Below, piece after piece: positions 6,617-28,016 of a stretch of 32,000 nucleotides of DNA; position 1 is the stretch's first letter, and each line of letters starts with the position of its first letter. The notes under the pieces are model-generated. The model was not told the origin of the DNA, did no database searches, and saw only the letters and a list, made by a program, of their open reading frames with translations. A program made the translations under genes and the position numbers. This DNA comes from Wallemia ichthyophaga EXF-994 (taxonomy: Eukaryota > Fungi > Basidiomycota): NCBI RefSeq assembly GCF_000400465.1, contig NW_008806276.1:60001-92000 (forward strand). The letters run 5' to 3'.

Positions 6617-6801
6617 CTAGCTATTGGGTAAATATCAGGTCCACTCGCCATATTTTTAATATGATTCTCTGAATTCACGATTGTATGTTTTAGAAATAAA
6701 TGTTGTTTACTGTAATTAATGAAAGACATTAAAGATATCAGAGGGGTATATAAATAATCTAAAAGAGTGCAATAGCACTGACCGGACTCGCCTTGAAGGC
6801 G

Positions 6802-7119
6802 TCAGTACGAGAGCGAGTATTGATTAGTGTGTTTGAAATCATAGACCATTACGCTGAGCTCGTAGATGTAGTCGTTGAGGTCGTCGCGCTCCTGCTTCAA
6901 TTGCTTGTTGAAACTTCTCAAGTACTCAACTTCAGCTTTCAAGGAGGATTGCAAGCGTTGACGTTCGCCGTGCCGAGTATTGCAGCAGAGATGCAGAGAC
7001 TCCGCCTCATTCTTAGTAATTTCTGAGCCAGAGACATCGCGTACAATGTCTATTCCTGTTAGCAAGTGCTGATATAGATCACAATCAATCGTCTTACTTT
7101 TCTCGCTTTTTTGGATCAT
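6802..7119 (-). CDS. Hypothetical ~105-aa protein with C-terminal coiled coil
   Basis: ATG-initiated ORF containing LQSSLKAEVEYLRSFNKQLKQERDDLNDYIYEL. A 3' intron (GTAATG..ACTGAC..AAG) may extend it to a TAG at ~6759. Confidence 0.5.
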   Translation of the reverse strand: MIQKSEKSKTIDCDLYQHLLTGIDIVRDVSGSEITKNEAESLHLCCNTRHGERQRLQSSLKAEVEYLRSFNKQLKQERDDLNDYIYELSVMVYDFKHTNQYSLSY

Positions 7120-7363
7120 TTATGCAGTGAGGATATAAGAGGAGAAGAAACTGAGTAGACTCTGCACGGACTGCGTGGTCCCGCTCGGAATCCGCTCATA
7201 CGAATCTAGGGTGGTGAAAATCCGTGCCTGGAAACATCACAAGTATGTTTCCGGTAACAGTCGATGTTAAGCCTTCCTCAAACACTTGCAGATAAATGTT
7301 CAAGTAATATTGCGTGTATTATCTATCAACATCTCTATCAAGCTACTTATTACGAAGACATGA

Positions 7364-7704
7364 TCAGCTATCCTGCCTCTCGAGCTCATCTAGTACCTTG
7401 TACGCTCCCTTCTCTTCCAATGCCTTGATGAAAAGGATCCGTGCCATCTCGTCGTCCCCGAAGCGATGGAGCTTAAGCACCTCATTTCGGTAGTCAGGCC
7501 TAACTCCGAAAAGAGCGTGTGCAGCTGTATCCGTATCCAGCGAGAAGTTTGCGTTTGAGTGGGAGCGTGAATAACTACCAAAAGCACTCTTGATGTCGAG
7601 CATGTCAGGTTGATCTTCTTCGATAGCAAAATTAAACTTACAGATACCGGAGCAGCAAGCACAGAGCCTAAAACTATCCCAGTAAAGGCTGCTGCAAGCT
7701 TCAT
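7364..7704 (-). CDS. Small secreted protein, 95 aa, 2 exons
   Basis: Exon 7704-7642 encodes MKLAAAFTGIVLGSVLAAPVS (signal peptide). A 53-nt intron at 7641-7589 (GTAAGT..CTGAC..AAG) follows, then exon 7588-7364 SAFGSYSRSHSNANF...DELERQDS*. The splice joins two ORF-track frames in phase 0. Confidence 0.78.
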
Positions 7705-7906
7705 GAGTTGAAGATGTGGCGGATGTAAGTTCTCGCTGAGCAAAAGCTCCCGAGGGGGAAGCTTTCGGGTAAAAGCATACGCTAGCTCTTCTAATAATTT
7801 TAAATGATGATGTCATTTAATAATTAGGAGCATAAAGAGTCGTAAATGGCTATCATTGTATTATCGTAAATATTGGCACATTTCAATTACATCAAAGAAT
7901 CAAATA

Positions 7907-8506
7907 TTATCCCCCGCATGTTCCGTGAATAAGGAATCTCGAAAACCCTTCAATGTTTGACCTACCTTCGAGAAATAACTGGCTACCTCCGCAGGGAGTT
8001 TTGCTCCAATTAATAGTCTTATCTGAGTGATGATTAAGCACGGCATATCCATGCCAACTATCGTCAAAGTTTTGCTTTATACATTTAGTAGATTCCTTCG
8101 GTTTCTCGTTTGTTAATTTTTGGTTCATCGCACTTGATATCTTTTCCAAATGTGGATACTTGGTACATGAATTTTCGACGTGGAATTTGTAAGTGTTGTC
8201 TGATATTGCCGTTTCAATCACATTACATCTATATGTATACCAATCATAGATGGCAATGCCACTGTCATACGCAGCTCTCAGACCAAATGACAAGATTCCG
8301 ATAGAGAACCAGATTGGAACCTGATGCGTTGGAGAGCTATTGACAGGCAAATATTTAGGAAAAACCACGCGCATACTTTGAGATATAGAGTAAAAAATAG
8401 AAACATTTTCGAATGTCAAGCATTCATTATGAATGAAGTAGTTAGTGATAAGCTTGAGAAATAATGCTGCGCAATTGATGGCTATGACTTTGTGAATCGT
8501 TACCAT
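7907..8506 (-). CDS. Cys-containing CSS2-like / killer-toxin-like protein, copy A (199 aa)
   Basis: Hydrophobic N-terminus and internal helix, then C-x19-C..EKISSAM..KCIKQNFDDSWHGYAVL..PCGG. This resembles from memory the C..C..C-x7-WxGY..CG pattern of fungal CSS2-type domains. Not verified by search. Confidence 0.5.
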   Translation of the reverse strand: MVTIHKVIAINCAALFLKLITNYFIHNECLTFENVSIFYSISQSMRVVFPKYLPVNSSPTHQVPIWFSIGILSFGLRAAYDSGIAIYDWYTYRCNVIETAISDNTYKFHVENSCTKYPHLEKISSAMNQKLTNEKPKESTKCIKQNFDDSWHGYAVLNHHSDKTINWSKTPCGGSQLFLEGRSNIEGFSRFLIHGTCGG

Positions 8507-8938
8507 ATGATGAGAGTTGAGAGGATAGGACGCGACAGTGGATAGGCTGCTCGAAAGATTTCAATAATGATAACATTTCGTCTTTGACATTAATTCTGAT
8601 TACTTACTGAACACCCACTTCCAACTCCCAAACCTCTAGATGAGACGCTTCAATTTTAAACTTAGAATTCCATAAACCGTAATTGTTTATTCAATTTACT
8701 TGAAGCTCCTCCGGCTGAAACTTTGTGTCATTTTGTCTACGACAACAGGAAACGCCCAATATTGAGACAATGACGCATTAAAGTACACGCCTTTTTATTT
8801 GTTTACAAGCTTCAGCCGAATCACTTGGCAGTTTCATTAAATGACGAGATGTGATGATAGAAGTGAGAAACATCAGCCCAGCTGGCTTTATAAGAAGCGC
8901 TATATCTTTCTTTCTTCTTCACAACTAAGAAAATTGAA

Positions 8939-9659
8939 ATGTACTTCAACAACGTCAAAGCTCTCGCCGTTCTCGCCTTTACTAGCGCCATCGTATTAGT
9001 AGCCGCTGCACCTAACCCAGCTGGCAACATCTCGTATCGCGGAGATGTAGGAGATGTCGGTCACAAGAATGAAAACTCTGAAAAGGGTGTGGATGCCAAG
9101 AACAACGATAATTACGACAAATACGATAAGCAAGACAAGGAATCTCACGAAGAGGCGCTCAAGAAGCACAGCAAAGAGGTCGAAAAGCAGAAAATGCTGA
9201 CGAAAGAAGCTGCCGAAAAGAACAAAGCAAATGACAAGGTTGGTAATGACGAAGCTTGCTGAAAATTGGCTTACACAGTAATAGAACCAGAAGACAGACG
9301 AGTACTGGAAGGGTGAGAAGAAAGATGACAACACGTACGACAACAAGTCTGGTAATAAGAAGCAAGACAATCAGTACGACACCAGTAAGAAACAAGATTC
9401 TGGCAAGCACGATACCGACATGAAACAAGAGCACTACAACGACAAAAAGCAAGACAATCACTACGACACCAGTAAGAAACAAGATTCTGGCAAGCACGAT
9501 ACCGACATGAAACAAGAGCACTACAACGACAAAAAGCAAGACAATCACTACGACACCAGTAAGAAACAAGATTCTGGCAAGCACGATACCGACATGAAAC
9601 AAGAACACGACAACGACAAGAAGCAAGACAATCATTACGATACCGACAAGAAAGACTAA
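8939..9659 (+). CDS. Secreted K/D/H-rich repeat protein, copy A (224 aa; 2 full 29-aa repeats), 2 exons
   Basis: Signal peptide MYFNNVKALAVLAFTSAIVLVAA. A phase-0 intron at 9239-9284 (GTTGGT..TAG) joins ...KANDK to NQKTDEYWKGEKKDD..., in frame with the MKQEHYNDKKQDNHYDTSKKQDSGKHDTD repeats. Confidence 0.82.
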
Positions 9660-10010
9660 GCTTCGATTGTTTGTTAAGCTTATTGTACACTGTGTTCATG
9701 AATGATTCTATCATTGAACAAAGATATTAATTTTGAGTATTCAGCAAGGTGCTTTGTTCTTTACCCCGATAGGGCCTCTCGCTTATCAAGCTATTCCAAA
9801 AATAAAATCTTACTTATCCCAGCTGAGTTTGAACCCTTCAAGTTTGTCTCCTTTGTTCCACACTCTCACTACCGTAATTGATCCCTAAATCCGTCTTATC
9901 CACCTTATTTAACACAAGATACTTGACATGGACAAGCGAGATATCTAAGCGACCGTGACTATCTACCTATACAGTAATTCAAGACCACATCTAGCTCAAA
10001 TAACATCGGG

Positions 10011-11201
10011 ATGAAGTTGGAATTAGTCGCGATAGCTGCAATTATTCAGTTTGTCTTAGCGAAAGAGCCCTGGGATGACTTTAAGCATATCAAGGCATCG
10101 TTATTTGCTAATATAGTCACTTTTCACATTAAGAACACCATCATTGCTTGACGGACAAAAGTCAGAATTTTGATATTGCTGTTAATGGTATACCTTTTGA
10201 TACAAGCGTGTCATACTGAACAGGGGCCAGATTCGGACCGAATAGTGAGCCAATTCCCAAGCTCGAATATATTGCTGATTTGCTTAGGCATTAGTCAGGG
10301 ATCACGTCACCAAGACCCAGCAAATGCATGGTCGCACTTCTGGGAGGCCAACCCTTACGCGAAAGGGGTCAAAATTTTAGACTGTGGGGATATTCCAGTG
10401 ATTACAGTAGACAACCAGATGTCATAAAAAAGCACCGAAGCTGCGCACGACAATCTTCTCAATCGACCAACTGCAAGTAAGCATCTAAAGCATCCAATGC
10501 TACTCACATTTGGAGGTGACCACTCAATTGAGTTGCCAATTCTGCGTACTCTAAAAAAGGCGCGTAATCCGCGCTATTCATCGAAGTACATTTCCCGACA
10601 CTCATCTCTAGGTACACGGTCCTATATCGCTTATTCAGATCGACTCTCATATCGATACATGGTCTTCAGGCAAAAAGTATGGGTTCAGTGATAAGCACGA
10701 CACAGCACCTGTCTCTCATGGCAACATGCTTTGGCATGCGTCGGAGGAAAATTTGCTTACCTCGAGATCGATCCAAGCTGGAATAAGGACGCGTTTTACA
10801 AAAGAAAGGGATATTACAGATAATAAAGAGTTTGGTATAAAAATGATCACGATCGATGCTATAGATGAAATCGGTGCAAAGGGAATTGCAGATCAAATTA
10901 GAAAAAGGGTCGGCAATACGGCAGCCTATTTGACAATTGATATAGACTCAGTTGATCCTGCCTTTGCCGGCGCCACTGGAACACCCGAGCCTGGTGGGCT
11001 TACCACGCGCGAAGCCAAGACTATTTTAAGGAATCTGAAGGGTTTAAATTTTGTTGGGGCAGATATAGTCGAAGTTATTCACCATATGACGCTGGAAGTG
11101 AGCTAAGACAGATGGTCGCGGCTGATGTGGCACATGAAATTCTTCAATTACTGACTACGTCACCAATTATGGAATCCAGCGTAATTCACGATGAGTTGTG
11201 A
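10011..11201 (+). pseudogene. Agmatinase/ureohydrolase-family pseudogene with signal peptide and C-terminal HDEL, copy A
   Basis: Motifs FDIAVNGIPFDTSVSY*TGARFGP, GGDHSI, DSHIDTW and DIDSVDPAFAGATGTPEPGG. Lesions: -1 frameshift at ~10124, TAA 10130, TGA 10217, TAA 10425, GC donor at 10560, -1 frameshift at ~11080. The restored end reads ...SSVIHDEL*. Confidence 0.88.
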
Positions 11202-11638
11202 ATGCATTTAAATAAGCTTTCACTAATGATTTACGCTTCTAAAGGTCTCTTTTCGTATTTATTACATCACATAGCTAAGAAATGCACATCGATGCCCATA
11301 TTTTGCCACTTATACGACTTCCTACGAGCTTGTATGTCAAAAACAAGCAATCTAAATGCTGCTAAATTCAACACTTTCTATTCTCCATTTATTCAATGTC
11401 ATATATGGAACTATCACCAGGAACTCACCAGGAATTCACCGATTAGGAAGGAAGATAAAGATATCTAGGCACTTCATTATCAAACCTACATGCAAGAATA
11501 CTATCGCTTAATTTCCGTCGCTTAATTGACCTTCACATGATTTATTGACCAGAACATACAGTTGATAAGATGTCTGATAAGGCGTCGATAAGGATGAGGA
11601 TAAGTAGGGTCGTTTTTTCAATAACTCTTCTTTCACCA

Positions 11639-13598
11639 ATGAATAAAGAAGAAAAAAGGAGCCTTCCATAAACTCAGCGTGTTTTTTTTTTTTTAACAAT
11701 GCCGAGCCGGAGTCTTCAACAAAAAGGGGCTCTCATACCAGCCGAAATCTGAATAGACGTCATATCCAAATTTACGGAATAGGTGGTGTGAGTTGAAAGA
11801 GAAAGGAAAGGATTGATTGCTGATCTAAAAAGGTTATTGGGACGGCGGTGATTGTCACACTAGGAGAACAGAACACAGAAGCAGGTGTGTTTGTCTCGCG
11901 TAAAAATAAAACCACTCAAAACTCACAGGACCGCTATTCTTGTTGCTGGCTTATACCTTCTGGAGCTGCATAATCTACATCGTGAATTAATGTGTAGCAG
12001 TGCCCACTTGTCGTCTACCAGTAGAGAATGATGCATTTGTGGATTTCGCTGGTAATTATATATCACCAGCGTTTGGTGTGTCTATTGGGTACAATTACTT
12101 TTTGTGCATGGTGAGAGCTATTGATTGAAGTGTAATCACGTAACAACATCTTCAGATAGGTCTTCTCTGCTTTGAAATTACAAACTTCGGAAACGCTATC
12201 AACTACTGGACCACAGAGCCATTACACCCGGCTATAATGGTATCTGCGAGTATTGCAGCTTATGTCCTCATACACTCATGGGACTCGAGATGGTTCGGGG
12301 AGTCAGAGTTTGTGGGTTAGTTTGGAGATATTGCTTATTTTCTAAAAGCTATGCAGTGGATCGTTATCTTGAAACTCTTATTGCTGGTAATGTGTGTATT
12401 GTATACTTTAGTCACTATGTGCGGCGGAAATCCCCTCAATGGCGCTTATGGATTCAGATATTGGCGCGACCCTGGTCCAATAGTGGGTAATACAGCTTTA
12501 ACGCAACTGCAGGCGTTTCTAGCAGCGCTTTTGGTGCCTCATTTGCCGTCGCAGGACCAGACATGCTCTCAATAATCTCTGGAGAAGCTAGAGATCCTCG
12601 TAGAGTGATGCCGATCGCATTCAGAACAGTATTTGTTTGGTTGTTTGTGTTCTTCATCCTTTCAACACTCGCTGTTGGTATTGTTATATCTTCAGAGGAT
12701 AAAATTTTACTCAACTCCATCAAGAACAACGGAGCTGGAGCTGCCCAATCACCTTACGGAGCTAGCATGATGAGGCTGAAGATCAAAAGGCTTCCTCATC
12801 TAGTTAACGCCTCGATTACTACTAGCATTTTTAGTGCTGGATCAGCATTCTTTTTCAATTCATTACGTACACTGCACGGCTTGGCTGTTCAAGGGTTTGG
12901 CCCAGTTATCTTTAAACGTGTAAATAGAAATGGTGTTCCCTACGCAACGATTTTTGTTACAACGGCTTTCGCCTGCTTGAGCTACTTGAAAATTGGTAAT
13001 GGTAGCTCGAAGGTCCTCGATTGGTTCATTGGTGAGCGTCAGAAACACAAAGCTATTTCAACTGCTGACATGAGATCAAGGTATCTCTACCGCTGCGCAA
13101 CTGATCACTTGATGCGTTATTTGTGTAACATATTTGCGCTGGGAGAAGGCGATGAAGGTGCAAAGTTTGTGGGAGACTGAAAATTTAAATTATCGCTCTA
13201 AGCTCATGCCTTATGGTGCTTGGTGAGTTTACTGAGTCTTTGTCGTACCGGTAAGCTGACGTAGCCGAGGTTTGCTCTATTTTGCGCAACGGCAGTGACG
13301 TTAATAAACGGCTATACGGTTTTCTAGATGGAAACTGGGATATTGCTGACTTGTGTGTTGGAATTTGGAATTCTTGCCAAACTAATACCACATCAGCTTC
13401 TTTACTTACTTCTCACCGATATGCTTCGTGGTGCTTGGTGTTGGATATAGTGTGATCAAGAAAGAGGGGCTGGTTAGTCCTGACAAGGCAGACTTTTTCA
13501 CCGAGATGAAGGAGATCGACGAACACGAGAATTCACTGCTTGCACAAGAGGAGGAGAAACCTTTTTCAGCGAAGAAGGCTATTAATTGGATTCTTTAG
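11639..13598 (+). pseudogene. Amino-acid/polyamine permease (YAT/APC family, Agp2-like) pseudogene
   Basis: Motifs LNRRHIQIYGIGG|VIGT, WFGESEF|W, TMCGGNP..GFRYWRDPG, GEARDPRR and NRNGVPY. Lesions: frame break after ATG 11639, TAA 11988, frameshift ~12530, TGA 13110 (where W is expected), frameshift ~13323. Confidence 0.85.
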
Positions 13599-14255: not shown

Positions 14256-16064
14256 TTACATTTCATTGAAAGTGCTGAGGTTCATCCAGCACGTTTCATC
14301 AGTCGCCGTGAACGAACTTCCTGATAGGAGAGTATACTCATCAAATTCGGACATGTCCAGAGCAGATACAGGCTCTGGCAATATCCAGTTCAATGGGGGC
14401 GCTTGTTTTGGAGTTTGTGTTTGCTTCTCTGTTTCACTCAAATCCAAACCAATCTTCCTAGCTTCGTCTTCTAATTTTTTGAGCTGATTCGTGTAAGTAC
14501 AGGCTCAAACATTAAGCGATACCTACAAATCCATGTGCGGCGGTACACAATTGCTCGTGATCTTGAAAAATCTCACTATGGTCAAGAGCTCATTCTCTAT
14601 AGTACTAACAGCCTGAATGTCTAAATTCTTAGCAGCTTCAATGTAAGCACCGACAAGAATGGACGCCGAGCTGCTGTATGTTGTGAAAATCATGCTAGGC
14701 AGCCGCGTCAAATCGTAGGTGGTAGCCATTAACTTGTGAAGAGAGTTGATTGCCACGCGCGAGTAAAAGAGTAGTCTAGATTGCGAAAGCTTCTCGCTAT
14801 TGAATTGCGAATGTAGGCTAAGCATGCACTTAGCAGCGATCATATGCGCCATCAAATTGTCAATATCAAGACCATCCTCATCCACGCGAACTGGATCAGA
14901 GTATTTCGAAGGAAAGCTCTGCCTGAATGTTTGTATTAAAGTATCCAACTCTCCAAATGACACTAATTGACTGCCTGACGTCAAACACAACGCTTGAACG
15001 TCGTAAAAACTTCTCAAGTGAAAGTCATTAACTCTCCCCATCAGTACGAGGGCCTTAATGAGTAGTGACAGTCCATCACCTAGATGTTGGATAAAAAAAT
15101 TGGGCGAGTACACGTACTCAGTACTTTTCGCTATTCGACTCGTGAAAGTGCTATTCTTGAAAGCTTTCAAAGTGCAAGGTAGCGGAGTAAACAAATGGCC
15201 TTCTTGAATTATACTCGGGTTTATGCCAGTATCTAGTGTAAACAGCTGGTCGATTATGTAGGCCTTGAAAAACAGCCGCCTTCGTTGCTCAACCTCTAAA
15301 TCACTGCCTGCGGCTGTCAAATACCACTTCCTAGGATAATCTGTGTCATGATTGAGTGAAAATGCTATTACTCCTCGAGCAGCGAAGGCTACCGGAAAAA
15401 ACAAGTCGGCTTTGTTACCAATTGAAAAAAGGTGTTGACTTATTATTATAGCGGCATGTATTCGCTCTAGCACAAACATCAGCCCAGGCGATTGGCCATC
15501 TTCGTTCAGCTTCTCTAGGGCTAGCGCGGTGTGTTTTTCGGAAGGATCTTTGTTAGGAAGATGTTGGAATGCGATAGCGAATACGGCGTGACAGAGTGCT
15601 TTGCAGGGGAATTTCGGTGAGGTTGGGGGTAGATGCATCAGTCTAGTTTCGAATGACTGTCTGGGAAGATCACTTGCAGCGAAAGGCGAACACGCGTAAA
15701 ATGTAGATATCAGGTAGCTAACCATATCTTTAGGTGGGAAATCTTTTGGCCAATTTGACGTTGTAATTTTGAGCGGTTCAGCGGAGGTAGATGGCATGCT
15801 ACTGCTATTACTATTGCTGTTGCTGCTATCTATTTTCACTCTCTCCAGCTTATCCTCCAGTTCTCTGATTCTGTCTTCGTAAGCCCGCAGCTTAGTCGCC
15901 CTCCTAGCTGACTGCCGCGATTCATTATCGTAAATGCATTCTAATCCACCGCTCCTGACGCAATTCGAGCAGATTGGTTTGACGGCATCGCAGCGCATCT
16001 TCTTCCTACGGCAAGCGAGGCATGCTGAGCCTTTCGGTAGCGTGTCCGATTGTGCTTTAGGCAT
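14256..16064 (-). CDS. Zn(II)2Cys6 transcription factor (513-aa ORF; probable last exon 14483-14256)
   Basis: ACLACRRKKMRCDAVKPICSNCVRSGGLECIY zinc cluster, a coiled coil, and a fungal TF middle region (RRRLFFKAYIID). The TAG at 14525-14523 abuts a GT donor (see findings). Confidence 0.9.
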
Positions 16065-17579: not shown

Positions 17580-18340
17580 TGTAAGCATAATCCTGGTGCT
17601 TTTTCTATGTCCGTGCTTTCTATCTGCCTATTCTCTCTGATAAGCAGAAGTCCCCACCAGCTGAACATGATGTTAGCCGTTAATCAAGCATGACAATGCT
17701 GCCACTCACATATATGCAATGATTGTAGAGATGAAGCAAAACTGCTTTTATCAGCGAATCAGAATGATTTCATCGAAGCACTCCTCACAAGAACAGCCAA
17801 ATCGAGAAGAACGTTGAGTAGAGTTGATGTGGAGATGTTTCCGATGAGAAGGGCGGTAAAGGTTGATGGGAGGAAGGTTGCTGAGCTGTTTATTAAACGC
17901 CATTGAGCAGTTAAATCAGCGCACCAATCAAGCCCTCGAGTAAATTAACACGATTTTCGAACATTAAAAAGTTAGATGCTGCACTTCAAGACATATCTTA
18001 CAAGTCGCAGTCATAGCCGGTGCTTCAGGCACCTTATCAACTCTTGTGATTACCTAAAATAGCTTGAGCTTGAATCGAGTTTATATTATGCCTTTAGTTA
18101 TAGAAGAAGTTAGTAAATACTCCTTCACATATTTATAGATACAACTTCTACTCTCAAACCACTACTAAACACTAGCTTACCATTTTCCGCCTCGTGACCT
18201 TGAGGTGCGAGACATTCAGCGGATTGATGGAGCGTCTTGAAACAACGGCGAGAAAGCGGGATATTCATGTTCATAGGTACGGTTATTCCCCGTATTAGTT
18301 AGAGCGCTTCAAGGCGCTTCATACGAGGGGCTAGAGATGG
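17580..18340 (-). pseudogene. Diverged paralog of the 5100-5850 remnant
   Basis: Shared blocks such as gaagcaaaactgcttt, ctcctcacaagaacagc, ccggtgcttcaggcaccttatc and gagacattcagcggattgatg, with many substitutions and indels. Contains stops (e.g. att taa ctg where the other copy has att caa ctg). Confidence 0.45.
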
Positions 18341-18828
18341 AAGACGGGATCCTCATACTATACTCGACGTTCTGTTGCTATTCTGTTCACCTCTCATACA
18401 TCAATGCAGCCATAATTTATAATTTAGGAGTGTTTCACAACCTCTTTTATACAATATACGCTCACTTCAGCGCAAAGGATCTTTACAGCTGCATGACTAC
18501 CATTCAAATGTATACTCAACACTTTCGGAAGTTCAGAGAGTGTAATACTTTGCTTGTGCCTCATTTCCTGCCTATGATGTCAATTTCACTGCTACTATCG
18601 CCCAGATGCAATCGATTATGTTGATTCTACACCAATTAGACGCACCACGAGAAGGCCATTTTGATCTGCTTTCACTCCACTCTACTCAAAGGATGTGCCT
18701 ATTTCGACACTGACAAGCTCGCGTCGATATACTGCGCCTCCTTTGACGCGAAGTATCATTCCTTGGTCGAGTGTATAAATAAGGCTGTTCTTTTTCACTA
18801 TCTCTCATCCCGCTTCTGCCACTTAAGT

Positions 18829-19200
18829 ATGAAGTTTCCAGTCACTTTAGTTCTATTAGTCGCTGTTCTTTGTTGTCTTGTCGAAGCAGCCAAGCGCCGG
18901 GGGTACAATAGAGGCATCCTCGACAAGAAAGGTATGATGCAAAAGAGAGGTATCCTCGGTAAGAAGGAATTTGGCAAGAGATACATCCTCGATAAGAGCG
19001 AATACGTCAAGAGAGGCGGATTGACTGATATCCTGGACAAGAGAGATATCTACCGCAGACAAGAAAATAATTACGACTTCGACGAACTGACAGACATGAA
19101 GAGGGGTATCCTCAGTCGTCAAGATAACGATGACCTCGAGGAACTTTCAGCCATCAAGAGAGAGATTCTCAAGCGTCAAGATGATGAAACGCTCGAATGA
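18829..19200 (+). CDS. Secreted Kex2-type repeat precursor, copy B
   Basis: Same protein sequence as 6245-6616. Confidence 0.8.
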   Translation: MKFPVTLVLLVAVLCCLVEAAKRRGYNRGILDKKGMMQKRGILGKKEFGKRYILDKSEYVKRGGLTDILDKRDIYRRQENNYDFDELTDMKRGILSRQDNDDLEELSAIKREILKRQDDETLE

Positions 19201-19385
19201 CTAGCTATTGGGTAAATATCAGGTCCACTCGCCATATTTTTAATATGATTCTCTGAATTCACGATTGTATGTTTTAGAAATAAATGTTGTTTACTGTAAT
19301 TAATGAAAGACATTAAAGATATCAGAGGGGTATATAAATAATCTAAAAGAGTGCAATAGCACTGACCGGACTCGCCTTGAAGGCG

Positions 19386-19703
19386 TCAGTACGAGAGCGA
19401 GTATTGATTAGTGTGTTTGAAATCATAGACCATTACGCTGAGCTCGTAGATGTAGTCGTTGAGGTCGTCGCGCTCCTGCTTCAATTGCTTGTTGAAACTT
19501 CTCAAGTACTCAACTTCAGCTTTCAAGGAGGATTGCAAGCGTTGACGTTCGCCGTGCCGAGTATTGCAGCAGAGATGCAGAGACTCCGCCTCATTCTTAG
19601 TAATTTCTGAGCCAGAGACATCGCGTACAATGTCTATTCCTGTTAGCAAGTGCTGATATAGATCACAATCAATCGTCTTACTTTTCTCGCTTTTTTGGAT
19701 CAT
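19386..19703 (-). CDS. Hypothetical coiled-coil protein, copy B
   Basis: Identical to 6802-7119. Confidence 0.5.
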   Translation of the reverse strand: MIQKSEKSKTIDCDLYQHLLTGIDIVRDVSGSEITKNEAESLHLCCNTRHGERQRLQSSLKAEVEYLRSFNKQLKQERDDLNDYIYELSVMVYDFKHTNQYSLSY

Positions 19704-19947
19704 TTATGCAGTGAGGATATAAGAGGAGAAGAAACTGAGTAGACTCTGCACGGACTGCGTGGTCCCGCTCGGAATCCGCTCATACGAATCTAGGGTGGTG
19801 AAAATCCGTGCCTGGAAACATCACAAGTATGTTTCCGGTAACAGTCGATGTTAAGCCTTCCTCAAACACTTGCAGATAAATGTTCAAGTAATATTGCGTG
19901 TATTATCTATCAACATCTCTATCAAGCTACTTATTACGAAGACATGA

Positions 19948-20288
19948 TCAGCTATCCTGCCTCTCGAGCTCATCTAGTACCTTGTACGCTCCCTTCTCTT
20001 CCAATGCCTTGATGAAAAGGATCCGTGCCATCTCGTCGTCCCCGAAGCGATGGAGCTTAAGCACCTCATTTCGGTAGTCAGGCCTAACTCCGAAAAGAGC
20101 GTGTGCAGCTGTATCCGTATCCAGCGAGAAGTTTGCGTTTGAGTGGGAGCGTGAATAACTACCAAAAGCACTCTTGATGTCGAGCATGTCAGGTTGATCT
20201 TCTTCGATAGCAAAATTAAACTTACAGATACCGGAGCAGCAAGCACAGAGCCTAAAACTATCCCAGTAAAGGCTGCTGCAAGCTTCAT
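19948..20288 (-). CDS. Small secreted 95-aa protein, copy B
   Basis: Identical to 7364-7704, including the 53-nt intron. Confidence 0.78.
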
Positions 20289-20483
20289 GAGTTGAAGATG
20301 TGGCGGATGTAAGTTCTCGCTGAGCAAAAGCTCCCGAGGGGGAAGCTTTCGGGTAAAAGCATACGCTAGCTCTTCTAATAATTTTAAATGATGATGTCAT
20401 TTAATAATTAGGAGCATAAAGAGTCGTAAATGGCTATCATTGTATTATCGTAAATATTGGCACATTTCAATTACATCAAAGAA

Positions 20484-21092
20484 TCAAATATTATCCCCCG
20501 CATGTTCCGTGAAGAACTGGAATCTTGCAATCCCTTCAATATCTAGCTTACCTTCGAAAAATAACTGACTACCTCCGCAAGGACTTTTGCTCAAATCAAT
20601 AGTCTTATCTGAGTGATCATTAAGTACGGCGTATCCATGCCAACTATCGTCAAACTTTTGCTTTATACATTTAGTAGACCCCCTCGGTTTCTCGTTTGTT
20701 AACTTGTGGTTCATCGCACTTGATATCTTTTCCAAATGTGGATACTTGGTACATGAATTTTCGACGTGGAATTTGTAAGTGTTGTCTGATATTGCCGTTT
20801 CAATCACATTACATCTATATGTATACCAATCATAGATGGCAATGCCACTGTCATACGCAGCTCTCAGACCAAATGACAAGATTCCGATAGAGAACCAGAT
20901 TGGAACCTGATGCGTTGGAGAGCTATTGACAGGCAAATATTTAGGAAAAACCACGCGCATACTTTGAGATATAGAGTAAAAAATAGAAACATTTTCGAAT
21001 GTCAAGCATTCATTATGAATGAAGTAGTTAGTGATAAGCTTGAGAAATAATGCTGCGCAATTGATGGCTATGACTTTGTGAATCGTTACCAT
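20484..21092 (-). CDS. CSS2-like / killer-toxin-like protein, copy B (202 aa)
   Basis: Same N-terminal ~128 aa as copy A, with a diverged C-terminus ending FQFFTEHAGDNI. Confidence 0.5.
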   Translation of the reverse strand: MVTIHKVIAINCAALFLKLITNYFIHNECLTFENVSIFYSISQSMRVVFPKYLPVNSSPTHQVPIWFSIGILSFGLRAAYDSGIAIYDWYTYRCNVIETAISDNTYKFHVENSCTKYPHLEKISSAMNHKLTNEKPRGSTKCIKQKFDDSWHGYAVLNDHSDKTIDLSKSPCGGSQLFFEGKLDIEGIARFQFFTEHAGDNI

Positions 21093-21524
21093 ATGATGAG
21101 AGTTGAGAGGATAGGACGCGACAGTGGATAGGCTGCTCGAAAGATTTCAATAATGATAACATTTCGTCTTTGACATTAATTCTGATTACTTACTGAACAC
21201 CCACTTCCAACTCCCAAACCTCTAGATGAGACGCTTCAATTTTAAACTTAGAATTCCATAAACCGTAATTGTTTATTCAATTTACTTGAAGCTCCTCCGG
21301 CTGAAACTTTGTGTCATTTTGTCTACGACAACAGGAAACGCCCAATATTGAGACAATGACGCATTAAAGTACACGCCTTTTTATTTGTTTACAAGCTTCA
21401 GCCGAATCACTTGGCAGTTTCATTAAATGACGAGATGTGATGATAGAAGTGAGAAACATCAGCCCAGCTGGCTTTATAAGAAGCGCTATATCTTTCTTTC
21501 TTCTTCACAACTAAGAAAATTGAA

Positions 21525-22941
21525 ATGTACTTCAACAACGTCAAAGCTCTCGCCGTTCTCGCCTTTACTAGCGCCATCGTATTAGTAGCCGCTGCACCTA
21601 ACCCAGCTGGCAACATCTCGTATCGCGGAGATGTAGGAGATGTCGGTCACAAGAATGAAAACTCTGAAAAGGGTGTGGATGCCAAGAACAACGATAATTA
21701 CGACAAATACGATAAGCAAGACAAGGAATCTCACGAAGAGGCGCTCAAGAAGCACAGCAAAGAGGTCGAAAAGCAGAAAATGCTGACGAAAGAAGCTGCC
21801 GAAAAGAACAAAGCAAATGACAAGGTTGGTAATGACGAAGCTTGCTGAAAATTGGCTTACACAGTAATAGAACCAGAAGACAGACGAGTACTGGAAGGGT
21901 GAGAAGAAAGATGACAACACGTACGACAACAAGTCTGGTAATAAGAAGCAAGACAATCAGTACGACACCAGTAAGAAACAAGATTCTGGCAAGCACGATA
22001 CCGACATGAAACAAGAGCACTACAACGACAAAAAGCAAGACAATCACTACGACACCAGTAAGAAACAAGATTCTGGCAAGCACGATACCGACATGAAACA
22101 AGAGCACTACAACGACAAAAAGCAAGACAATCACTACGACACCAGTAAGAAACAAGATTCTGGCAAGCACGATACCGACATGAAACAAGAGCACTACAAC
22201 GACAAAAAGCAAGACAATCACTACGACACCAGTAAGAAACAAGATTCTGGCAAGCACGATACCGACATGAAACAAGAGCACTACAACGACAAAAAGCAAG
22301 ACAATCACTACGACACCAGTAAGAAACAAGATTCTGGCAAGCACGATACCGACATGAAACAAGAGCACTACAACGACAAAAAGCAAGACAATCACTACGA
22401 CACCAGTAAGAAACAAGATTCTGGCAAGCACGATACCGACATGAAACAAGAGCACTACAACGACAAAAAGCAAGACAATCACTACGACACCAGTAAGAAA
22501 CAAGATTCTGGCAAGCACGATACCGACATGAAACAAGAGCACTACAACGACAAAAAGCAAGACAATCACTACGACACCAGTAAGAAACAAGATTCTGGCA
22601 AGCACGATACCGACATGAAACAAGAGCACTACAACGACAAAAAGCAAGACAATCACTACGACACCAGTAAGAAACAAGATTCTGGCAAGCACGATACCGA
22701 CATGAAACAAGAGCACTACAACGACAAAAAGCAAGACAATCACTACGACACCAGTAAGAAACAAGATTCTGGCAAGCACGATACCGACATGAAACAAGAG
22801 CACTACAACGACAAAAAGCAAGACAATCACTACGACACCAGTAAGAAACAAGATTCTGGCAAGCACGATACCGACATGAAACAAGAACACGACAACGACA
22901 AGAAGCAAGACAATCATTACGATACCGACAAGAAAGACTAA
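21525..22941 (+). CDS. Secreted K/D/H-rich repeat protein, copy B (456 aa; 10 full repeats)
   Basis: Same exon 1 and intron (21825-21870) as copy A. ORF 22006-22941 is 10 x 29 aa plus a 21-aa terminal variant. Confidence 0.82.
22006..22875 (+). repeat. Coding minisatellite: 10 identical 87-bp units
   Basis: Unit atgaaacaagagcactacaacgacaaaaagcaagacaatcactacgacaccagtaagaaacaagattctggcaagcacgataccgac is repeated head-to-tail with no spacers. Confidence 0.96.
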
Positions 22942-23292
22942 GCTTCGATTGTTTGTTAAGCTTATTGTACACTGTGTTCATGAATGATTCTATCATTGAA
23001 CAAAGATATTAATTTTGAGTATTCAGCAAGGTGCTTTGTTCTTTACCCCGATAGGGCCTCTCGCTTATCAAGCTATTCCAAAAATAAAATCTTACTTATC
23101 CCAGCTGAGTTTGAACCCTTCAAGTTTGTCTCCTTTGTTCCACACTCTCACTACCGTAATTGATCCCTAAATCCGTCTTATCCACCTTATTTAACACAAG
23201 ATACTTGACATGGACAAGCGAGATATCTAAGCGACCGTGACTATCTACCTATACAGTAATTCAAGACCACATCTAGCTCAAATAACATCGGG

Positions 23293-24483
23293 ATGAAGTT
23301 GGAATTAGTCGCGATAGCTGCAATTATTCAGTTTGTCTTAGCGAAAGAGCCCTGGGATGACTTTAAGCATATCAAGGCATCGTTATTTGCTAATATAGTC
23401 ACTTTTCACATTAAGAACACCATCATTGCTTGACGGACAAAAGTCAGAATTTTGATATTGCTGTTAATGGTATACCTTTTGATACAAGCGTGTCATACTG
23501 AACAGGGGCCAGATTCGGACCGAATAGTGAGCCAATTCCCAAGCTCGAATATATTGCTGATTTGCTTAGGCATTAGTCAGGGATCACGTCACCAAGACCC
23601 AGCAAATGCATGGTCGCACTTCTGGGAGGCCAACCCTTACGCGAAAGGGGTCAAAATTTTAGACTGTGGGGATATTCCAGTGATTACAGTAGACAACCAG
23701 ATGTCATAAAAAAGCACCGAAGCTGCGCACGACAATCTTCTCAATCGACCAACTGCAAGTAAGCATCTAAAGCATCCAATGCTACTCACATTTGGAGGTG
23801 ACCACTCAATTGAGTTGCCAATTCTGCGTACTCTAAAAAAGGCGCGTAATCCGCGCTATTCATCGAAGTACATTTCCCGACACTCATCTCTAGGTACACG
23901 GTCCTATATCGCTTATTCAGATCGACTCTCATATCGATACATGGTCTTCAGGCAAAAAGTATGGGTTCAGTGATAAGCACGACACAGCACCTGTCTCTCA
24001 TGGCAACATGCTTTGGCATGCGTCGGAGGAAAATTTGCTTACCTCGAGATCGATCCAAGCTGGAATAAGGACGCGTTTTACAAAAGAAAGGGATATTACA
24101 GATAATAAAGAGTTTGGTATAAAAATGATCACGATCGATGCTATAGATGAAATCGGTGCAAAGGGAATTGCAGATCAAATTAGAAAAAGGGTCGGCAATA
24201 CGGCAGCCTATTTGACAATTGATATAGACTCAGTTGATCCTGCCTTTGCCGGCGCCACTGGAACACCCGAGCCTGGTGGGCTTACCACGCGCGAAGCCAA
24301 GACTATTTTAAGGAATCTGAAGGGTTTAAATTTTGTTGGGGCAGATATAGTCGAAGTTATTCACCATATGACGCTGGAAGTGAGCTAAGACAGATGGTCG
24401 CGGCTGATGTGGCACATGAAATTCTTCAATTACTGACTACGTCACCAATTATGGAATCCAGCGTAATTCACGATGAGTTGTGA
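23293..24483 (+). pseudogene. Agmatinase-family pseudogene, copy B
   Basis: Same sequence and same lesions as 10011-11201. Confidence 0.88.
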
Positions 24484-24920
24484 ATGCATTTAAATAAGCT
24501 TTCACTAATGATTTACGCTTCTAAAGGTCTCTTTTCGTATTTATTACATCACATAGCTAAGAAATGCACATCGATGCCCATATTTTGCCACTTATACGAC
24601 TTCCTACGAGCTTGTATGTCAAAAACAAGCAATCTAAATGCTGCTAAATTCAACACTTTCTATTCTCCATTTATTCAATGTCATATATGGAACTATCACC
24701 AGGAACTCACCAGGAATTCACCGATTAGGAAGGAAGATAAAGATATCTAGGCACTTCATTATCAAACCTACATGCAAGAATACTATCGCTTAATTTCCGT
24801 CGCTTAATTGACCTTCACATGATTTATTGACCAGAACATACAGTTGATAAGATGTCTGATAAGGCGTCGATAAGGATGAGGATAAGTAGGGTCGTTTTTT
24901 CAATAACTCTTCTTTCACCA

Positions 24921-25533
24921 ATGAATAAAGAAGAAAAAAGGAGCCTTCCATAAACTCAGCGTGTTTTTTTTTTTTTAACAATGCCGAGCCGGAGTCTTCA
25001 ACAAAAAGGGGCTCTCATACCAGCCGAAATCTGAATAGACGTCATATCCAAATTTACGGAATAGGTGGTGTGAGTTGAAAGAGAAAGGAAAGGATTGATT
25101 GCTGATCTAAAAAGGTTATTGGGACGGCGGTGATTGTCACACTAGGAGAACAGAACACAGAAGCAGGTGTGTTTGTCTCGCGTAAAAATAAAACCACTCA
25201 AAACTCACAGGACCGCTATTCTTGTTGCTGGCTTATACCTTCTGGAGCTGCATAATCTACATCGTGAATTAATGTGTAGCAGTGCCCACTTGTCGTCTAC
25301 CAGTAGAGAATGATGCATTTGTGGATTTCGCTGGTAATTATATATCACCAGCGTTTGGTGTGTCTATTGGGTACAATTACTTTTTGTGCATGGTGAGAGC
25401 TATTGATTGAAGTGTAATCACGTAACAACATCTTCAGATAGGTCTTCTCTGCTTTGAAATTACAAACTTCGGAAACGCTATCAACTACTGGACCACAGAG
25501 CCATTACACCCGGCTATAATGGTATCTGCGAGT
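24921..25533 (+). pseudogene. 5' fragment of the permease pseudogene, truncated by the copy C junction
   Basis: Matches 11639-12251, including the premature TAA; it then switches abruptly to the antisense of the toxin-like gene. Confidence 0.85.
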
Positions 25534-26112
25534 GAACTGGAATCTTGCAATCCCTTCAATATCTAGCTTACCTTCGAAAAATAACTGACTACCTCCGCAA
25601 GGACTTTTGCTCAAATCAATAGTCTTATCTGAGTGATCATTAAGTACGGCGTATCCATGCCAACTATCGTCAAACTTTTGCTTTATACATTTAGTAGACC
25701 CCCTCGGTTTCTCGTTTGTTAACTTGTGGTTCATCGCACTTGATATCTTTTCCAAATGTGGATACTTGGTACATGAATTTTCCACGTAGAATTTGTAAGT
25801 GTTGTCTGATATTGCCGTTTCAATCACATTACATCTATATGTATACCAATCATAGATGGCAATGCCACTGTCATACGCAGCTCTCAGACCAAATGACAAG
25901 ATTCCGATAGAGAACCAGATTGGAACCTGATGCGTTGGAGAGCTATTGACAGGCAAATATTTAGGAAAAACCACGCGCATACTTTGAGATATAGAGTAAA
26001 AAATAGAAACATTTTCGAATGTCAAGCATTCATTATGAATGAAGTAGTTAGTGATAAGCTTGAGAAATAATGCTGCGCAATTGATGGCTATGACTTTGTG
26101 AATCGTTACCAT
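25504..26112 (-). CDS. CSS2-like / killer-toxin-like protein, copy C (202 aa; chimeric C-terminus)
   Basis: B-type sequence with an H-to-Y change (KFYVENS). The last residues TRRYHYSRV* are read from the antisense strand of the permease fragment. Confidence 0.5.
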   Translation of the reverse strand: MVTIHKVIAINCAALFLKLITNYFIHNECLTFENVSIFYSISQSMRVVFPKYLPVNSSPTHQVPIWFSIGILSFGLRAAYDSGIAIYDWYTYRCNVIETAISDNTYKFYVENSCTKYPHLEKISSAMNHKLTNEKPRGSTKCIKQKFDDSWHGYAVLNDHSDKTIDLSKSPCGGSQLFFEGKLDIEGIARFQFTRRYHYSRV

Positions 26113-27255
26113 ATGATGAGAGTTGAGAGGATAGGACGCGACAGTGGATAGGCTGCTCGAAAGATTTCAATAATGATAACATTTCGTCTTTGACATTAAT
26201 TCTGATTACTTACTGAACACCCACTTCCAACTCCCAAACCTCTAGATGAGACGCTTCAATTTTAAACTTAGAATTCCATAAACCGTAATTGTTTATTCAA
26301 TTTACTTGAAGCTCCTCCGGCTGAAACTTTGTGTCATTTTGTCTACGACAACAGGAAACGCCCAATATTGAGACAATGACGCATTAAAGTACACGCCTTT
26401 TTATTTGTTTACAAGCTTCAGCCGAATCACTTGGCAGTTTCATTAAATGACGAGATGTGATGATAGAAGTGAGAAACATCAGCCCAGCTGGCTTTATAAG
26501 AAGCGCTATATCTTTCTTTCTTCTTCACAACTAAGAAAATTGAAATGTACTTCAACAACGTCAAAGCTCTCGCCGTTCTCGCCTTTACTAGCGCCATCGT
26601 ATTAGTAGCCGCTGCACCTAACCCAGCTGGCAACATCTCGTATCGCGGAGATGTAGGAGATGTCGGTCACAAGAATGAAAACTCTGAAAAGGGTGTGGAT
26701 GCCAAGAACAACGATAATTACGACAAATACGATAAGCAAGACAAGGAATCTCACGAAGAGGCGCTCAAGAAGCACAGCAAAGAGGTCGAAAAGCAGAAAA
26801 TGCTGACGAAAGAAGCTGCCGAAAAGAACAAAGCAAATGACAAGGTTGGTAATGACGAAGCTTGCTGAAAATTGGCTTACACAGTAATAGAACCAGAAGA
26901 CAGACGAGTACTGGAAGGGTGAGAAGAAAGATGACAACACGTACGACAACAAGTCTGGTAATAAGAAGCAAGACAATCAGTACGACACCAGTAAGAAACA
27001 AGATTCTGGCAAGCACGATACCGACATGAAACAAGAGCACTACAACGACAAAAAGCAAGACAATCACTACGACACCAGTAAGAAACAAGATTCTGGCAAG
27101 CACGATACCGACATGAAACAAGAACACGACAACGACAAGAAGCAAGACAATCACTACGATACCGACAAGAAAGACTAAGCTTCGATTGTTTGTTAAGCTT
27201 ATTGTACACTGTGTTCATACATGATTCTATCATTGAACAAAGATATTAATTTTAG
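25534..27255. repeat. Segmental duplication copy C (matches copy B from 20514, offset +5020)
   Basis: Starts at gaactggaatcttgcaatccc, a B-type allele. Identity ends just after agatattaatttt at ~27253. Confidence 0.93.
26545..27178 (+). CDS. Secreted K/D/H-rich repeat protein, copy C (195 aa; 1 full repeat)
   Basis: Same structure as copy A but one 87-bp unit shorter; stop TAA at 27176-27178. Confidence 0.82.
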
Positions 27256-28016
27256 TATCGATAAGAACCTGCTTATCAAATAAATCTTCACATTTCCGAT
27301 GTATGAACCTCCCACCTGCGCAGTGATATCTGAGTTATCTATTCTCTAGGATGATTTGGGTGGCAGGTTTGAAGCTATTGAGTATTGCGCTAAGTCTGAG
27401 ATCAGTTTTACCATTCTGAAGCATTTGTTTGTCTGACAATCGGTGTTGATAAATCCTCGTTCATGTGAATCTCAATCCTGCGAATTAAAATCCATGCCAG
27501 TCAATGGAACGAAGGGAGCTCAGCCAACAGCTTTCTGTACACCACAAGCTGTACTTTATTATTGCAATTCCGACAGCGGGGCATTTCACCATCAACGCGC
27601 GTCTTATTATCGTTAAGCCTAACTATCACAGTCATTCTATCCAGACTCAGCTCATCAATATCACCCTTCACGAATTGGTCATGGATTAGCCCAATGAAGA
27701 ATTCTATCTCAGATATATGGCACCGATAGTGTAAAAACGGTAAAAAAATAGTCAAAAGCGAATGTTGCGCTAATGTGTATCGAAAAAGTTGCAACATTGT
27801 ATCGCATGTTATAAATCACAATCACGTTTGAGATTGTGTCAAGTGATGCCACTTTAATAGCATCAAGAATTATACATGGAAATTATGTTGGTAGAATGAA
27901 GTACAAAACGAGAATGCTCTACTTATTTTACTTAAATTTGGAAAATTTAAAATCCGAAACACTGAGACGAGGCAACCAATTTCCGAAATGGTAATCGCCG
28001 AAGGAAGACGAATAAG

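Follow-up and report, generated by a model that had tools for sequence, protein, structure and literature searches.

We analyzed a 32,000-nt stretch of the genome of the basidiomycete Wallemia ichthyophaga EXF-994 (the window; contig NW_008806276.1, positions 60,001 to 92,000) and found that it carries three neighboring paralogous genes, here called copies A, B, and C, for a hydrophilic protein with a signal peptide and a tail built of 29-aa tandem repeats. On comparative evidence these are real protein-coding genes of a family that appears restricted to Wallemia, as far as its homologues could be placed. The explanation that we favor, with a confidence just short of even, is that the product acts as an intact secreted hydrophilic polyampholyte that would work in the manner of dehydrins and hydrophilins while belonging to neither class, the length of the tail setting the activity per molecule.

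W. ichthyophaga is an obligately halophilic fungus with a 9.6-Mb genome, introns averaging 61 nt, and a very small gene set, and it has been described as the most halophilic fungus known (PMC3849046). Published accounts of salt adaptation center on hydrophobins, ion transporters, and the high-osmolarity glycerol (HOG) pathway. The gene models are already known, having been in GenBank as hypothetical proteins since 2013; a literature search found no description of the family, of its restriction to Wallemia, of the conserved intron and promoter, or of its physical chemistry.

Gene Models and the Predicted 46-nt Intron

The stretch analyzed matched the EXF-994 reference at 100% (scaffold KE007226.1, GCA_000400465.1; 4256-26064 of the window compared). 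A preliminary description of this DNA, made from the letters alone, had joined two exons through a 46-nt intron to give proteins of 224, 456, and 195 aa. These models could be reconstructed in all three copies (Table I). The predicted intron falls after codon 100, and its removal fuses the signal-peptide exon in frame with the repeat exon. Two of the models match the GenBank record of EXF-994, which carries a 456-aa (L001 3124-4540) and a 224-aa (L001 16406-17126) protein with identical spans, both named hypothetical, and the homologues described below keep the donor and an open exon 2. Without splicing, the open reading frames (ORFs) of all three copies stop after 107 aa at ...DKVGNDEAC*, which confirms the ending that had been given for the unspliced form. 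The spliced exon-exon junction had 0 matches in Joint Genome Institute (JGI) metagenome contigs, and an exact look-up of the unspliced 107-aa ORF in a protein collection returned no match.

Copy B has a second candidate acceptor, an in-frame CAG at 21876, 6 nt downstream of the TAG. The homologous locus L004 reads ...NQKIDEYWK past a 46-nt intron, in agreement with the acceptor chosen in W. ichthyophaga, and there too an in-frame CAG lies 6 nt on as a possible alternative. A 40-nt intron ending in cacAG was rejected as the productive form because TAA would then directly abut exon 1, leaving a product of 100 aa; its acceptor AG lies only 4-5 nt from the branch-like CTTAC, and it may occur as a minor form.

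Across copy B the plus strand has a single open frame, and two antisense frames are open too in W. ichthyophaga. The antisense ORFs at 21745-22917 (-) (390 aa) and 21857-22996 (-) (379 aa) read as hydrophobic nonsense repeats over the array. Antisense coding across the array was rejected because the minus-strand ORFs of 379-390 aa are broken in the homologues; these long ORFs simply follow from the codon make-up of the opposite, coding strand.

Homologues and Evidence for a Real Gene

An exhaustive HMMER search of 1.84 billion representative proteins gave six matches, all of them ORFs of 82-134 aa that run from exon 1 into the intron and stop just after the ...K-V-G that they have in common. 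One match comes from W. hederae and one from W. ichthyophaga; the others lie in Logan or European Nucleotide Archive (ENA) assemblies. The search of a 5.8-billion-cluster protein collection with the 224-aa protein returned nothing, and Wallemia ORFs were the sole relatives found in work with that collection. Exact look-up of the 224-, 456-, and 195-aa proteins there gave no match, though GenBank annotates two of them, and absence from the output of this collection must not be taken as absence from public data. A profile-guided scan of JGI metagenome contigs revealed no relatives, and a PDB profile search found no relative. Pfam, queried with five family members at E up to 1, returned only two chance-level matches of the homologue L007 (E 0.06 and 0.46), far below the cut-offs.

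The gene structure was conserved in the homologues. At L003, L004/L005, and L006 the donor, GTTGGT or GTGAGG, follows the same Lys codon, and a branch-like CTAAC, CTTAC, or CTGAC comes next. The first suitably spaced AG gives in-frame introns of 49 nt (L003), 46 nt (L004), and 46 nt (L006), whose sequences differ. Exon 2 of the homologues starts with (NQ)K(T/I)DEYWK or KDYWK and remains open over 110-150 codons. In the more divergent L007, the donor that follows the conserved Lys codon reads GTGGGT, and exon 2 is open over 129 codons; the acceptor is ambiguous, and the intron was modeled at 75 nt. In the exon-2 regions of all homologues, +1 was the sole frame open throughout. Exon 1 is under purifying selection, with a ratio of nonsynonymous to synonymous divergence (dN/dS) of 0.20-0.44 at dS 0.54-1.2. 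An alignment of the sequences upstream of seven loci showed conserved promoter blocks within ~130 nt, which are found likewise upstream of copies A and C (Table I).

Because the donor, the in-frame intron, the open exon 2, purifying selection, and the promoter blocks are kept in diverged homologues, and because the GenBank models agree in span and length, we take this to be a real protein-coding gene. The same data bear on the alternative that it is a young orphan gene of little or no function, weakly or not at all transcribed, which drifts in a duplication-prone region among pseudogenes. The region does contain an arginase-family neighbor that is pseudogenized in both copies and a truncated permease; the genome of EXF-994 holds a decayed paralogue, the syntenic site in two relatives is without a copy, and the proteins are not in a published table of genes that respond to NaCl. 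However, the dN/dS of exon 1 (0.2-0.44), the retention of frame, intron phase, and promoter blocks at dS 0.5-1.2, and the fact that all three copies are intact speak against an orphan gene, which we consider very improbable.

Tails of different family members could not be aligned as peptides. Those of L003 and L007 have no regular repeat, and that of L006 has short DDKKFEGKH and DDKHDKYE duplications. We infer that selection would act on composition and length and not on one particular peptide, because the repeats of other members differ or are missing. In W. hederae, the family member (L008 6001-6256; GCA_004918325.1, SPNW01000096.1) has its own 42-nt/14-aa tandem repeat, GVEYGKDSKDSDKK, after the N-terminal region, and its contig ends inside this repeat. 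Since this member carries a different repeat, repeat expansion has occurred independently within the family, and here too it has interrupted a short-read assembly.

Two further loci differ in organization. At L004 5714-6821 (Logan SRR25394091; the same gene is present in L005), two whole modules are fused into a protein of ~337 aa in the order helix block, intron, YW motif, K/D tail, and then a second helix block, intron, and tail. The second intron is 45 nt long and also starts with GTTGGT, and the neighbor of this locus is different (a Telomere_reg-2 gene). The decayed paralogue (L009 6001-6460; EXF-994 scaffold KE007243.1, ~184.1 kb) adjoins a hydrophobin gene. It has lost its start codon (ATT TAC TTC AAC), contains an internal stop, and lacks the tail after ...KTDEYRN; GenBank lists it as a 118-aa protein.

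Architecture and Physical Chemistry of the Protein

The layout of the family was derived from an alignment of five full models. The signal peptides follow the pattern M(Y/H/L)FN..KALAVLAFTGTIASVAAA, with a conserved hydrophobic h-region followed by small residues, and inspection showed no second hydrophobic stretch beyond the predicted signal peptide. On this inspection and the alignment, the assignment of the protein as secreted in the preliminary description stands, and the protein is predicted to be secreted. The ~10 residues that follow the signal peptide end in RRGD (L003, L006, and W. hederae), RGGD (L004), or YRGD (W. ichthyophaga); no other canonical dibasic site is present, and this RRGD-type site may delimit a pro-peptide. 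Between it and the conserved helix block lies a variable K/D/N stretch, and after the intron come a (D/E)YWK motif and a tail ending in ...DKK(Y/D).

AlphaFold2, run on a single sequence (mean predicted local distance difference test score (pLDDT) 54), modeled only the helix of the signal peptide and a helix at residues 66-103, with pLDDT ~80 in the latter and <55 elsewhere. The helix is highly charged and weakly amphipathic; the hydrophobic moment (µH) of the 18-residue window 68-85 was 0.35, ~4-fold the tail mean of 0.09.

The tail is built almost solely of K, D, N, Q, H, Y, S, and T. In the mature proteins of seven models, K accounts for 18-27%, D for 13-23%, N/Q for ~15-20%, H for 6-9%, and Y for 4-6% (5-6% in all except L007), with 0-7 residues of R and no C. 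The W. ichthyophaga copies have ~21% K, ~18% D, and almost no R, and the 29-aa unit contains 6 K, 6 D, 1 E, 3 H, 2 Y, and no C, exactly as had been claimed for it. The grand average of hydropathy (GRAVY) was -2.39 to -2.59 in the three copies and -2.19 to -2.45 in the homologues, and the isoelectric point was ~6.0-6.2 in the three copies and 6.0-7.0 across the family.

Charges in the tail are both abundant and evenly mixed. The fraction of charged residues (FCR) was 0.39-0.67 and the net charge per residue (NCPR) 0 to -0.07 in the family tails, and the W. ichthyophaga tail had values of ~0.47 and ~-0.04, respectively. Tail kappa was 0.03-0.09 compared with 0.14-0.18 for shuffled tails and lay ~2-4 standard deviations below the shuffles in six of the seven models. 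In the pooled tails, the dipeptides KH and HD were enriched over shuffles (z = 5.1 and 4.5), giving a recurring K-H-D motif. Such values mark the tail as a strong, well-mixed polyampholyte, which is expected to remain expanded and solvated. These charge values, together with the single helix at 66-103 and pLDDT ~50 elsewhere, bear out the view of a disordered, charge-balanced protein.

Comparison with Dehydrins, Hydrophilins, and Fungal DPR Proteins

Dehydrins (late embryogenesis abundant (LEA) group 2), in particular the His-rich KS type, are likewise hydrophilic, disordered, and rich in Lys, Asp/Glu, and His, with one short Lys-rich helix-forming segment; the roles proposed for them are the binding of water, ions, and metals and the shielding of other molecules. 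They are cytosolic or nuclear, whereas the Wallemia protein has a predicted signal peptide and would be extracellular, and there is no homology between the two. The defining feature of dehydrins is the Lys-rich, EKKGIMDKIKEKLPG-like K-segment (PMC4215689). In five family members the best ungapped match to the K-segment covered 4-6 of 15 residues, which equals the shuffled mean, and the Pfam Dehydrin and LEA families gave no match at E up to 1. The dehydrin Y-segment (T/V)D(E/Q)YGNP is matched at four of seven positions by TDEYWKG and TDEYWKS, but 7-8% of shuffles also reach 4/7; the likeness of TDEYWK to the Y-segment is a resemblance only and is not significant.

Hydrophilins were originally defined with a glycine content above 6%. 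The Garay-Arroyo criteria as given in PMC6730492 place the threshold at ≥8% glycine. The Wallemia protein shares with hydrophilins a GRAVY far below -1 and coil predicted over most of its length and differs from them in being predicted to be secreted. A GRAVY below -1 was found in all three copies and in the homologues, whereas glycine amounts to 5.0, 4.2, and 5.3% in A, B, and C, respectively, and to 4.8-7.0% in the homologues. Of the proposal that the protein is hydrophilin-like, the hydrophilicity is thus retained, and the glycine content of the copies (4.2-5.3%) is too low for formal membership. A further feature of hydrophilins is that they accumulate under water deficit; the family proteins are absent from the differential-expression table for 10% versus 30% NaCl, in which reads shared by the three copies would map to more than one place.

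The DPR proteins, such as DprA and DprB of Aspergillus fumigatus (PMC3103405) and TbDHN1 of Tuber borchii (PMC1550403), are also fungal and disordered and also have tandem repeats, of 23 aa, a length similar to the 29 aa of the Wallemia repeat. DprB is needed in the osmotic stress response (PMC3103405). The DPR motif defines these proteins, which reside in the cytosol or in peroxisomes, whereas the Wallemia family is predicted to be secreted and was seen only in Wallemia. The DPR tripeptide is absent from the 29-aa repeat, and no search revealed sequence similarity to Dpr proteins.

A Proposed Extracellular Role

We propose that the protein would be secreted intact to the wall or the extracellular matrix and would remain strongly hydrated there. 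Its non-collapsing polyampholyte chain would hold water and buffer ions outside the cell and could bind divalent metals through K-H-D sites, and a longer tail would provide more of the same activity per molecule. The tail evolves by the gain and loss of units, and the 87-nt unit would have multiplied in it by slippage or unequal exchange. Such a protein would do outside the cell what is attributed to dehydrins and hydrophilins inside it.

Several observations weigh against this proposal. None of the proteins appears in the table of Zajc et al. 2013 that lists genes expressed differentially between 10% and 30% NaCl, an absence that is weak evidence because reads mapping to several copies may have been discarded; a link to salt is not supported by these differential-expression data. 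The family gene numbers, derived from the neighbors GME818 and GME829, would be GME826 and GME833, and neither is among the rows considered of the all-genes table, which stop short of GME829 (34 reads per kilobase per million mapped reads). Exoproteins of halophiles are usually acidic and lysine-poor, whereas this protein has 21% lysine. Both the glycine content of hydrophilins and the K-segment of dehydrins are missing, and one paralogue in the EXF-994 genome (L009) has decayed. In addition, the regions around the Zn2Cys6 factor in the close relative L002 and in W. hederae L012 have no family member by synteny comparison; judged from this absence in two relatives, the gene is dispensable at that locus.

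Wallemia grows only at low water activity, and a stronger form of the proposal is a Wallemia-specific extracellular xeroprotectant, in which a Lys/Asp polyampholyte with Tyr/His "stickers" would remain solvated or form a hydrated gel in multimolar salt and coat the wall; duplicating the gene and expanding the repeat would be a rapid way to raise its dose. We regard this form as unlikely. If true, a fungus would for the first time be known to have an "outside-the-cell hydrophilin," and halophily would have a mechanism that the explanations based on compatible solutes, ion pumps, and hydrophobins do not cover.

The enrichment of KH and HD in the pooled tails (z = 5.1 and 4.5) and the high content of His (6-9%) and Asp (13-23%) in the mature protein also raise the question of whether binding of divalent cations or metals (Zn, Cu, Ni, Ca, or Mg) outside the cell through K-H-D, H-Y-D, or Asp clusters is the main activity. 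Such a protein would acquire metals or buffer Mg/Ca-rich bittern, a role that overlaps the one that we propose. His-rich KS-type dehydrins bind metals, which is a point in its favor. However, HxH, HH runs, and Cys, which mark strong metal sites, are absent, weak carboxylate/imidazole sites would be largely screened at the extreme NaCl in which this fungus lives, no transporter or metal-regulated gene was linked among the ORFs scanned, and the Pfam and PDB searches revealed no similarity to known zincophores. Metal binding as the main activity is therefore doubtful.

Tyr (5-6%) and Lys (~21%) could instead serve in a wall, matrix, or adhesive protein, whose tail would be cross-linked (through dityrosine or Lys-derived bonds) or gelled by salt and would cement sarcina-like clumps. 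The protein is predicted to be secreted and is repetitive, with an aromatic residue every ~9-21 residues of tail, and the thick-walled cells of W. ichthyophaga grow aggregated into compact clumps (Zajc et al. 2013, PMC3849046). Against this, the hydrophilic C terminus (...DKKD) gives no glycosylphosphatidylinositol (GPI) signal, the chain lacks a Ser/Thr-rich stalk and Cys, neither a Pir nor any other wall-linkage repeat is present, Pfam gave no match, and evenly mixed charges predict an expanded, non-sticking chain. We consider a wall or adhesive function improbable.

SP7-like effectors of Rhizophagus irregularis combine a signal peptide with imperfect hydrophilic tandem repeats and are lineage-specific and variable in repeat number. 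Their architecture is similar, but no relation to them in sequence was found, Wallemia is a free-living xerophile without a host, and no function of the nuclear-localization type is implied.

Whichever role applies, the family is a concrete and cheap candidate for the extracellular part of life at low water activity, and as a natural well-mixed polyampholyte its behavior in 0-5 M salt would be of interest to protein physicists. Its present value is that of a lead only, and its most striking feature, 2 versus 10 versus 1 units, is the least secure.

Possible Peptide Release at KK Pairs

The preliminary description had also raised the alternative that the tail is cut at two KK pairs per unit. 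The protein would then be a Kex2-processed repeat protein (KEP), and cleavage in the Golgi or by yapsins would release QDNHYDTS and QDSGKHDTDMKQEHYND as signals or effectors. KEPs such as the alpha-factor precursors and Ustilago Rep1 consist of a signal peptide followed by tandem repeats with dibasic pairs, as does the Wallemia protein. Unlike them, the Wallemia protein has long units (29 aa), no KR or RR between the units, and no conserved peptide.

A signal peptide, tandem repeats, and KK pairs are together what the pipeline of Le Marquer et al. 2019 (PMC6339444) formally asks for, since it falls back on KK when KR/RR sites are too few. A signal peptide without a transmembrane segment was seen by inspection, and at least three repeats split by KR, RR, or the fallback KK are formally present, via KK, in copies A and B. 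The same study counted six KEPs in W. ichthyophaga EXF-994 and placed Wallemia among the top relative producers (PMC6339444), and this protein may well be one of the six. The duplicated block also contains a canonical KEP-like gene, situated ~2.3 kb upstream.

The distribution of KK argues against processing. KK did not exceed its shuffled frequency in six of the seven models and was depleted in L006; it occurs at the rate expected from 21% Lys in copies A and C and in four homologues. It was above expectation in copy B only (26 observed versus 18.5 expected, P ~0.02), a value inflated by the ten identical units. Kex2 strongly prefers Arg at P1, which counts against KK processing. The W. ichthyophaga tails are without KR or RR, whereas the neighboring KEP-like gene has KR/RR 8-9 times per ~100 aa. 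The candidate peptides are not conserved either; L003 and L007 have no regular repeat, and W. hederae has a different 14-mer. With KK at chance frequency, no KR/RR in the tails, and unconserved peptides, cleavage into short peptides is disfavored on these sequence grounds, and we judge a KEP quite improbable.

The neighboring KEP-like gene itself is annotated, encodes 123 aa, and is present at 18829-19200 (+) and 6245-6616 (+). Its signal peptide is MKFPVTLVLLVAVLCCLVEA, and 8-9 KR/RR sites part short related peptides, among them GILDKKGMMQ, GILGKKEFG, YILDKSEYV, GGLTDILD, and GILSRQDNDDLEELSAI. Tandem Repeats Finder (TRF) detected 33- and 57-nt repeats in this region, and the gene had no Pfam match. 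It looks like a classic Kex2-processed repeat protein and illustrates the form that such a precursor takes in this genome.

Precursors of ustiloxin-type ribosomally synthesized and post-translationally modified peptides (RiPPs) contain a repeated core peptide flanked by KR and have UstYa/DUF3328, tyrosinase, or similar neighbors. We rejected this class because the tail has no KR and no DUF3328 was present among the scanned neighbors.

Repeat Array and Reliability of the Unit Counts

TRF identified the 87-nt unit in all three copies, at 9360-9644 in copy A (3.3 copies), 21946-22926 in copy B (11.3 copies, 99% matches, score 1920), and 26963-27163 in copy C (2.3 copies). In the register MKQEHYND...KHDTD, listing the units gave 2, 10, and 1 units identical at the DNA level in A, B, and C, respectively; these numbers, first read from the sequence in the preliminary description, hold as assembled. 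In the KKQDN register, A, B, and C have 3, 11, and 2 full units, respectively, and each array closes with a piece of 13 aa. All three begin with the same variant unit (Q for H) and have the same variant (EHDND) as their last full unit before an identical 13-aa piece; they differ solely in how many identical internal units they contain (1, 9, and 0, respectively). Copy C is set apart from the other copies by one synonymous change (CAC versus CAT) in the last partial unit, and it has ~80 nt of the common 3' flank beyond its stop.

For the EXF-994 assembly (2013), reads of Illumina libraries of 500 bp and 2 kb were joined by SOAPdenovo at K=21, and genes were called ab initio by GeneMark-ES. The internal units of copy B are identical over 783 nt, and the flanks of the array are alike in all three copies. 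Because the internal units are identical and the flanks the same, reads could not assign units to copies. The contigs of two other strains (GCA_004918015.1 and GCA_004918455.1) break off precisely at the first unit; in these assemblies the three loci are collapsed into one contig, and the gene is annotated as a 122-aa partial protein (E3P89_04141). Annotations of other strains are not independent support for the intron because the EXF-994 proteome served as their evidence.

These facts make it a serious possibility, though one that we place below even, that the 2/10/1 difference is an artifact of short-read assembly and gap filling and that the true numbers are other or equal. The library sizes and the small K behind the EXF-994 sequence, the nine identical internal units of B with shared end units and flanks that prevent read placement, and the break of both other assemblies at the first unit with merged loci all favor an artifact. 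On the other side, an array of 1 kb can be spanned by a 2-kb library, so that its size could be estimated; the stretch contains no N gaps; and genuine single-nucleotide polymorphisms separate the copies (A and B differ by 1% upstream of the array, and C has the one synonymous change), which shows that three loci exist. An artifact would touch the counts only and not the function. The unit numbers are the weakest part of the finding and stand "as assembled," not proven. The suggestion that the protein is tuned by repeat number found no support, since the counts are insecure and the tails of L003 and L007 match in composition without regular repeats.

Segmental Triplication and Neighboring Genes

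TABLE I. Positions of the family genes, their parts, and the surrounding blocks in the window
Feature	Position	Strand	Description
Copy A	8939-9659	+	Exon 1 8939-9238, intron 9239-9284, exon 2 9285-9659; product 224 aa
Copy B	21525-22941	+	Exon 1 21525-21824, intron 21825-21870, exon 2 21871-22941; product 456 aa
Copy C	26545-27178	+	Exon 1 26545-26844, intron 26845-26890, exon 2 26891-27178; product 195 aa
Intron of copy B (predicted)	21825-21870	+	46 nt, phase 0; GTTGGT donor, CTTAC branch-like site, TAG acceptor
Array of copy A	9357-9644	+	3.3 units
Array of copy B	21943-22926	+	87-nt/29-aa tandem repeat, 11.3 units; nine internal units (22030-22812) identical
Array of copy C	26963-27163	+	2.3 units
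Signal-peptide coding part, MYFNNVKALAVLAFTSAIVLVAAAP	21525-21599	+	Read from the sequence by inspection; conserved in all homologues
Charged helix block, S[HY]xxxLKKHxxEVEKQxK..EAAEKNK	21720-21824	+	~Residues 66-100; best-conserved coding block in the alignment
Promoter block, CCAAT-like, CAGCCGAAT	21398-21406	+	Upstream alignment, 7 loci; family form CAGCC(A/G)AT
Promoter block, AATGACGAGATGTGATGA	21426-21443	+	Upstream alignment, 7 loci; holds half of a cAMP response element (CRE)-like site, TGACG
Promoter block, CAGCCCAGC	21460-21468	+	Upstream alignment, 7 loci
Promoter block, TATA-like, TTTATAAGAAGCGC	21473-21486	+	Upstream alignment, 7 loci; family form TATAAGAAGCGC
Second copy of duplicated block	18582-25533		Matches 5998-12251; last 5020 bp (20514-25533) restart at 25534
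Third, partial block	25534-27258		Matches 20514-23022 apart from array length; abuts second copy; self-BLAST

The three copies lie in what the self-comparison identifies as a recent segmental triplication. Self-BLAST aligned 5998-12251 with 18582-25533 at 99.0% identity before the array and 99.9% after it, and 20514-23022 with 25534-27258 at 99.6%. The third copy begins exactly at the end of the second and therefore defines a 5020-bp tandem unit. An older layer of duplication at ~80% identity (5110-5909 versus 17596-18350) lies directly left of the 99% block. The difference between 99.0% before and 99.9% after the array, together with the ~80% layer, suggests more than one event or gene conversion.

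Each of the full blocks that contain A and B holds the KEP-like gene, two small annotated genes, an arginase-family pseudogene, and part of a permease, and the partial third block holds only gene C and its upstream sequence. Between the blocks are the remaining permease, a Zn2Cys6 gene, and an RTA1-like gene, and to the right of them lie Exo5-, MDM10-, and Rrn7-like housekeeping genes. PAP2 was among the neighboring ORFs scanned with Pfam. The 513-aa Zn2Cys6 ORF at 14523-16064 (-) is 99-100% identical to W. ichthyophaga proteins, and its exact look-up in the protein collection gave no match.

The gene of the arginase/agmatinase family, at 10011-11198 and 23293-24480 (+), has in-frame stops and frame shifts and is a pseudogene in both blocks. 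An intact arginase-family orthologue in the relative L002 encodes 381 aa with an N-terminal signal peptide and a C-terminal HDEL signal for retention in the endoplasmic reticulum. The amino-acid permease gene (25280-25534; also 10843-13598) is severed at the 25533/25534 junction, and a 438-aa GenBank model that joins Arginase and AA_permease domains looks like a fusion of the pseudogene with the permease.

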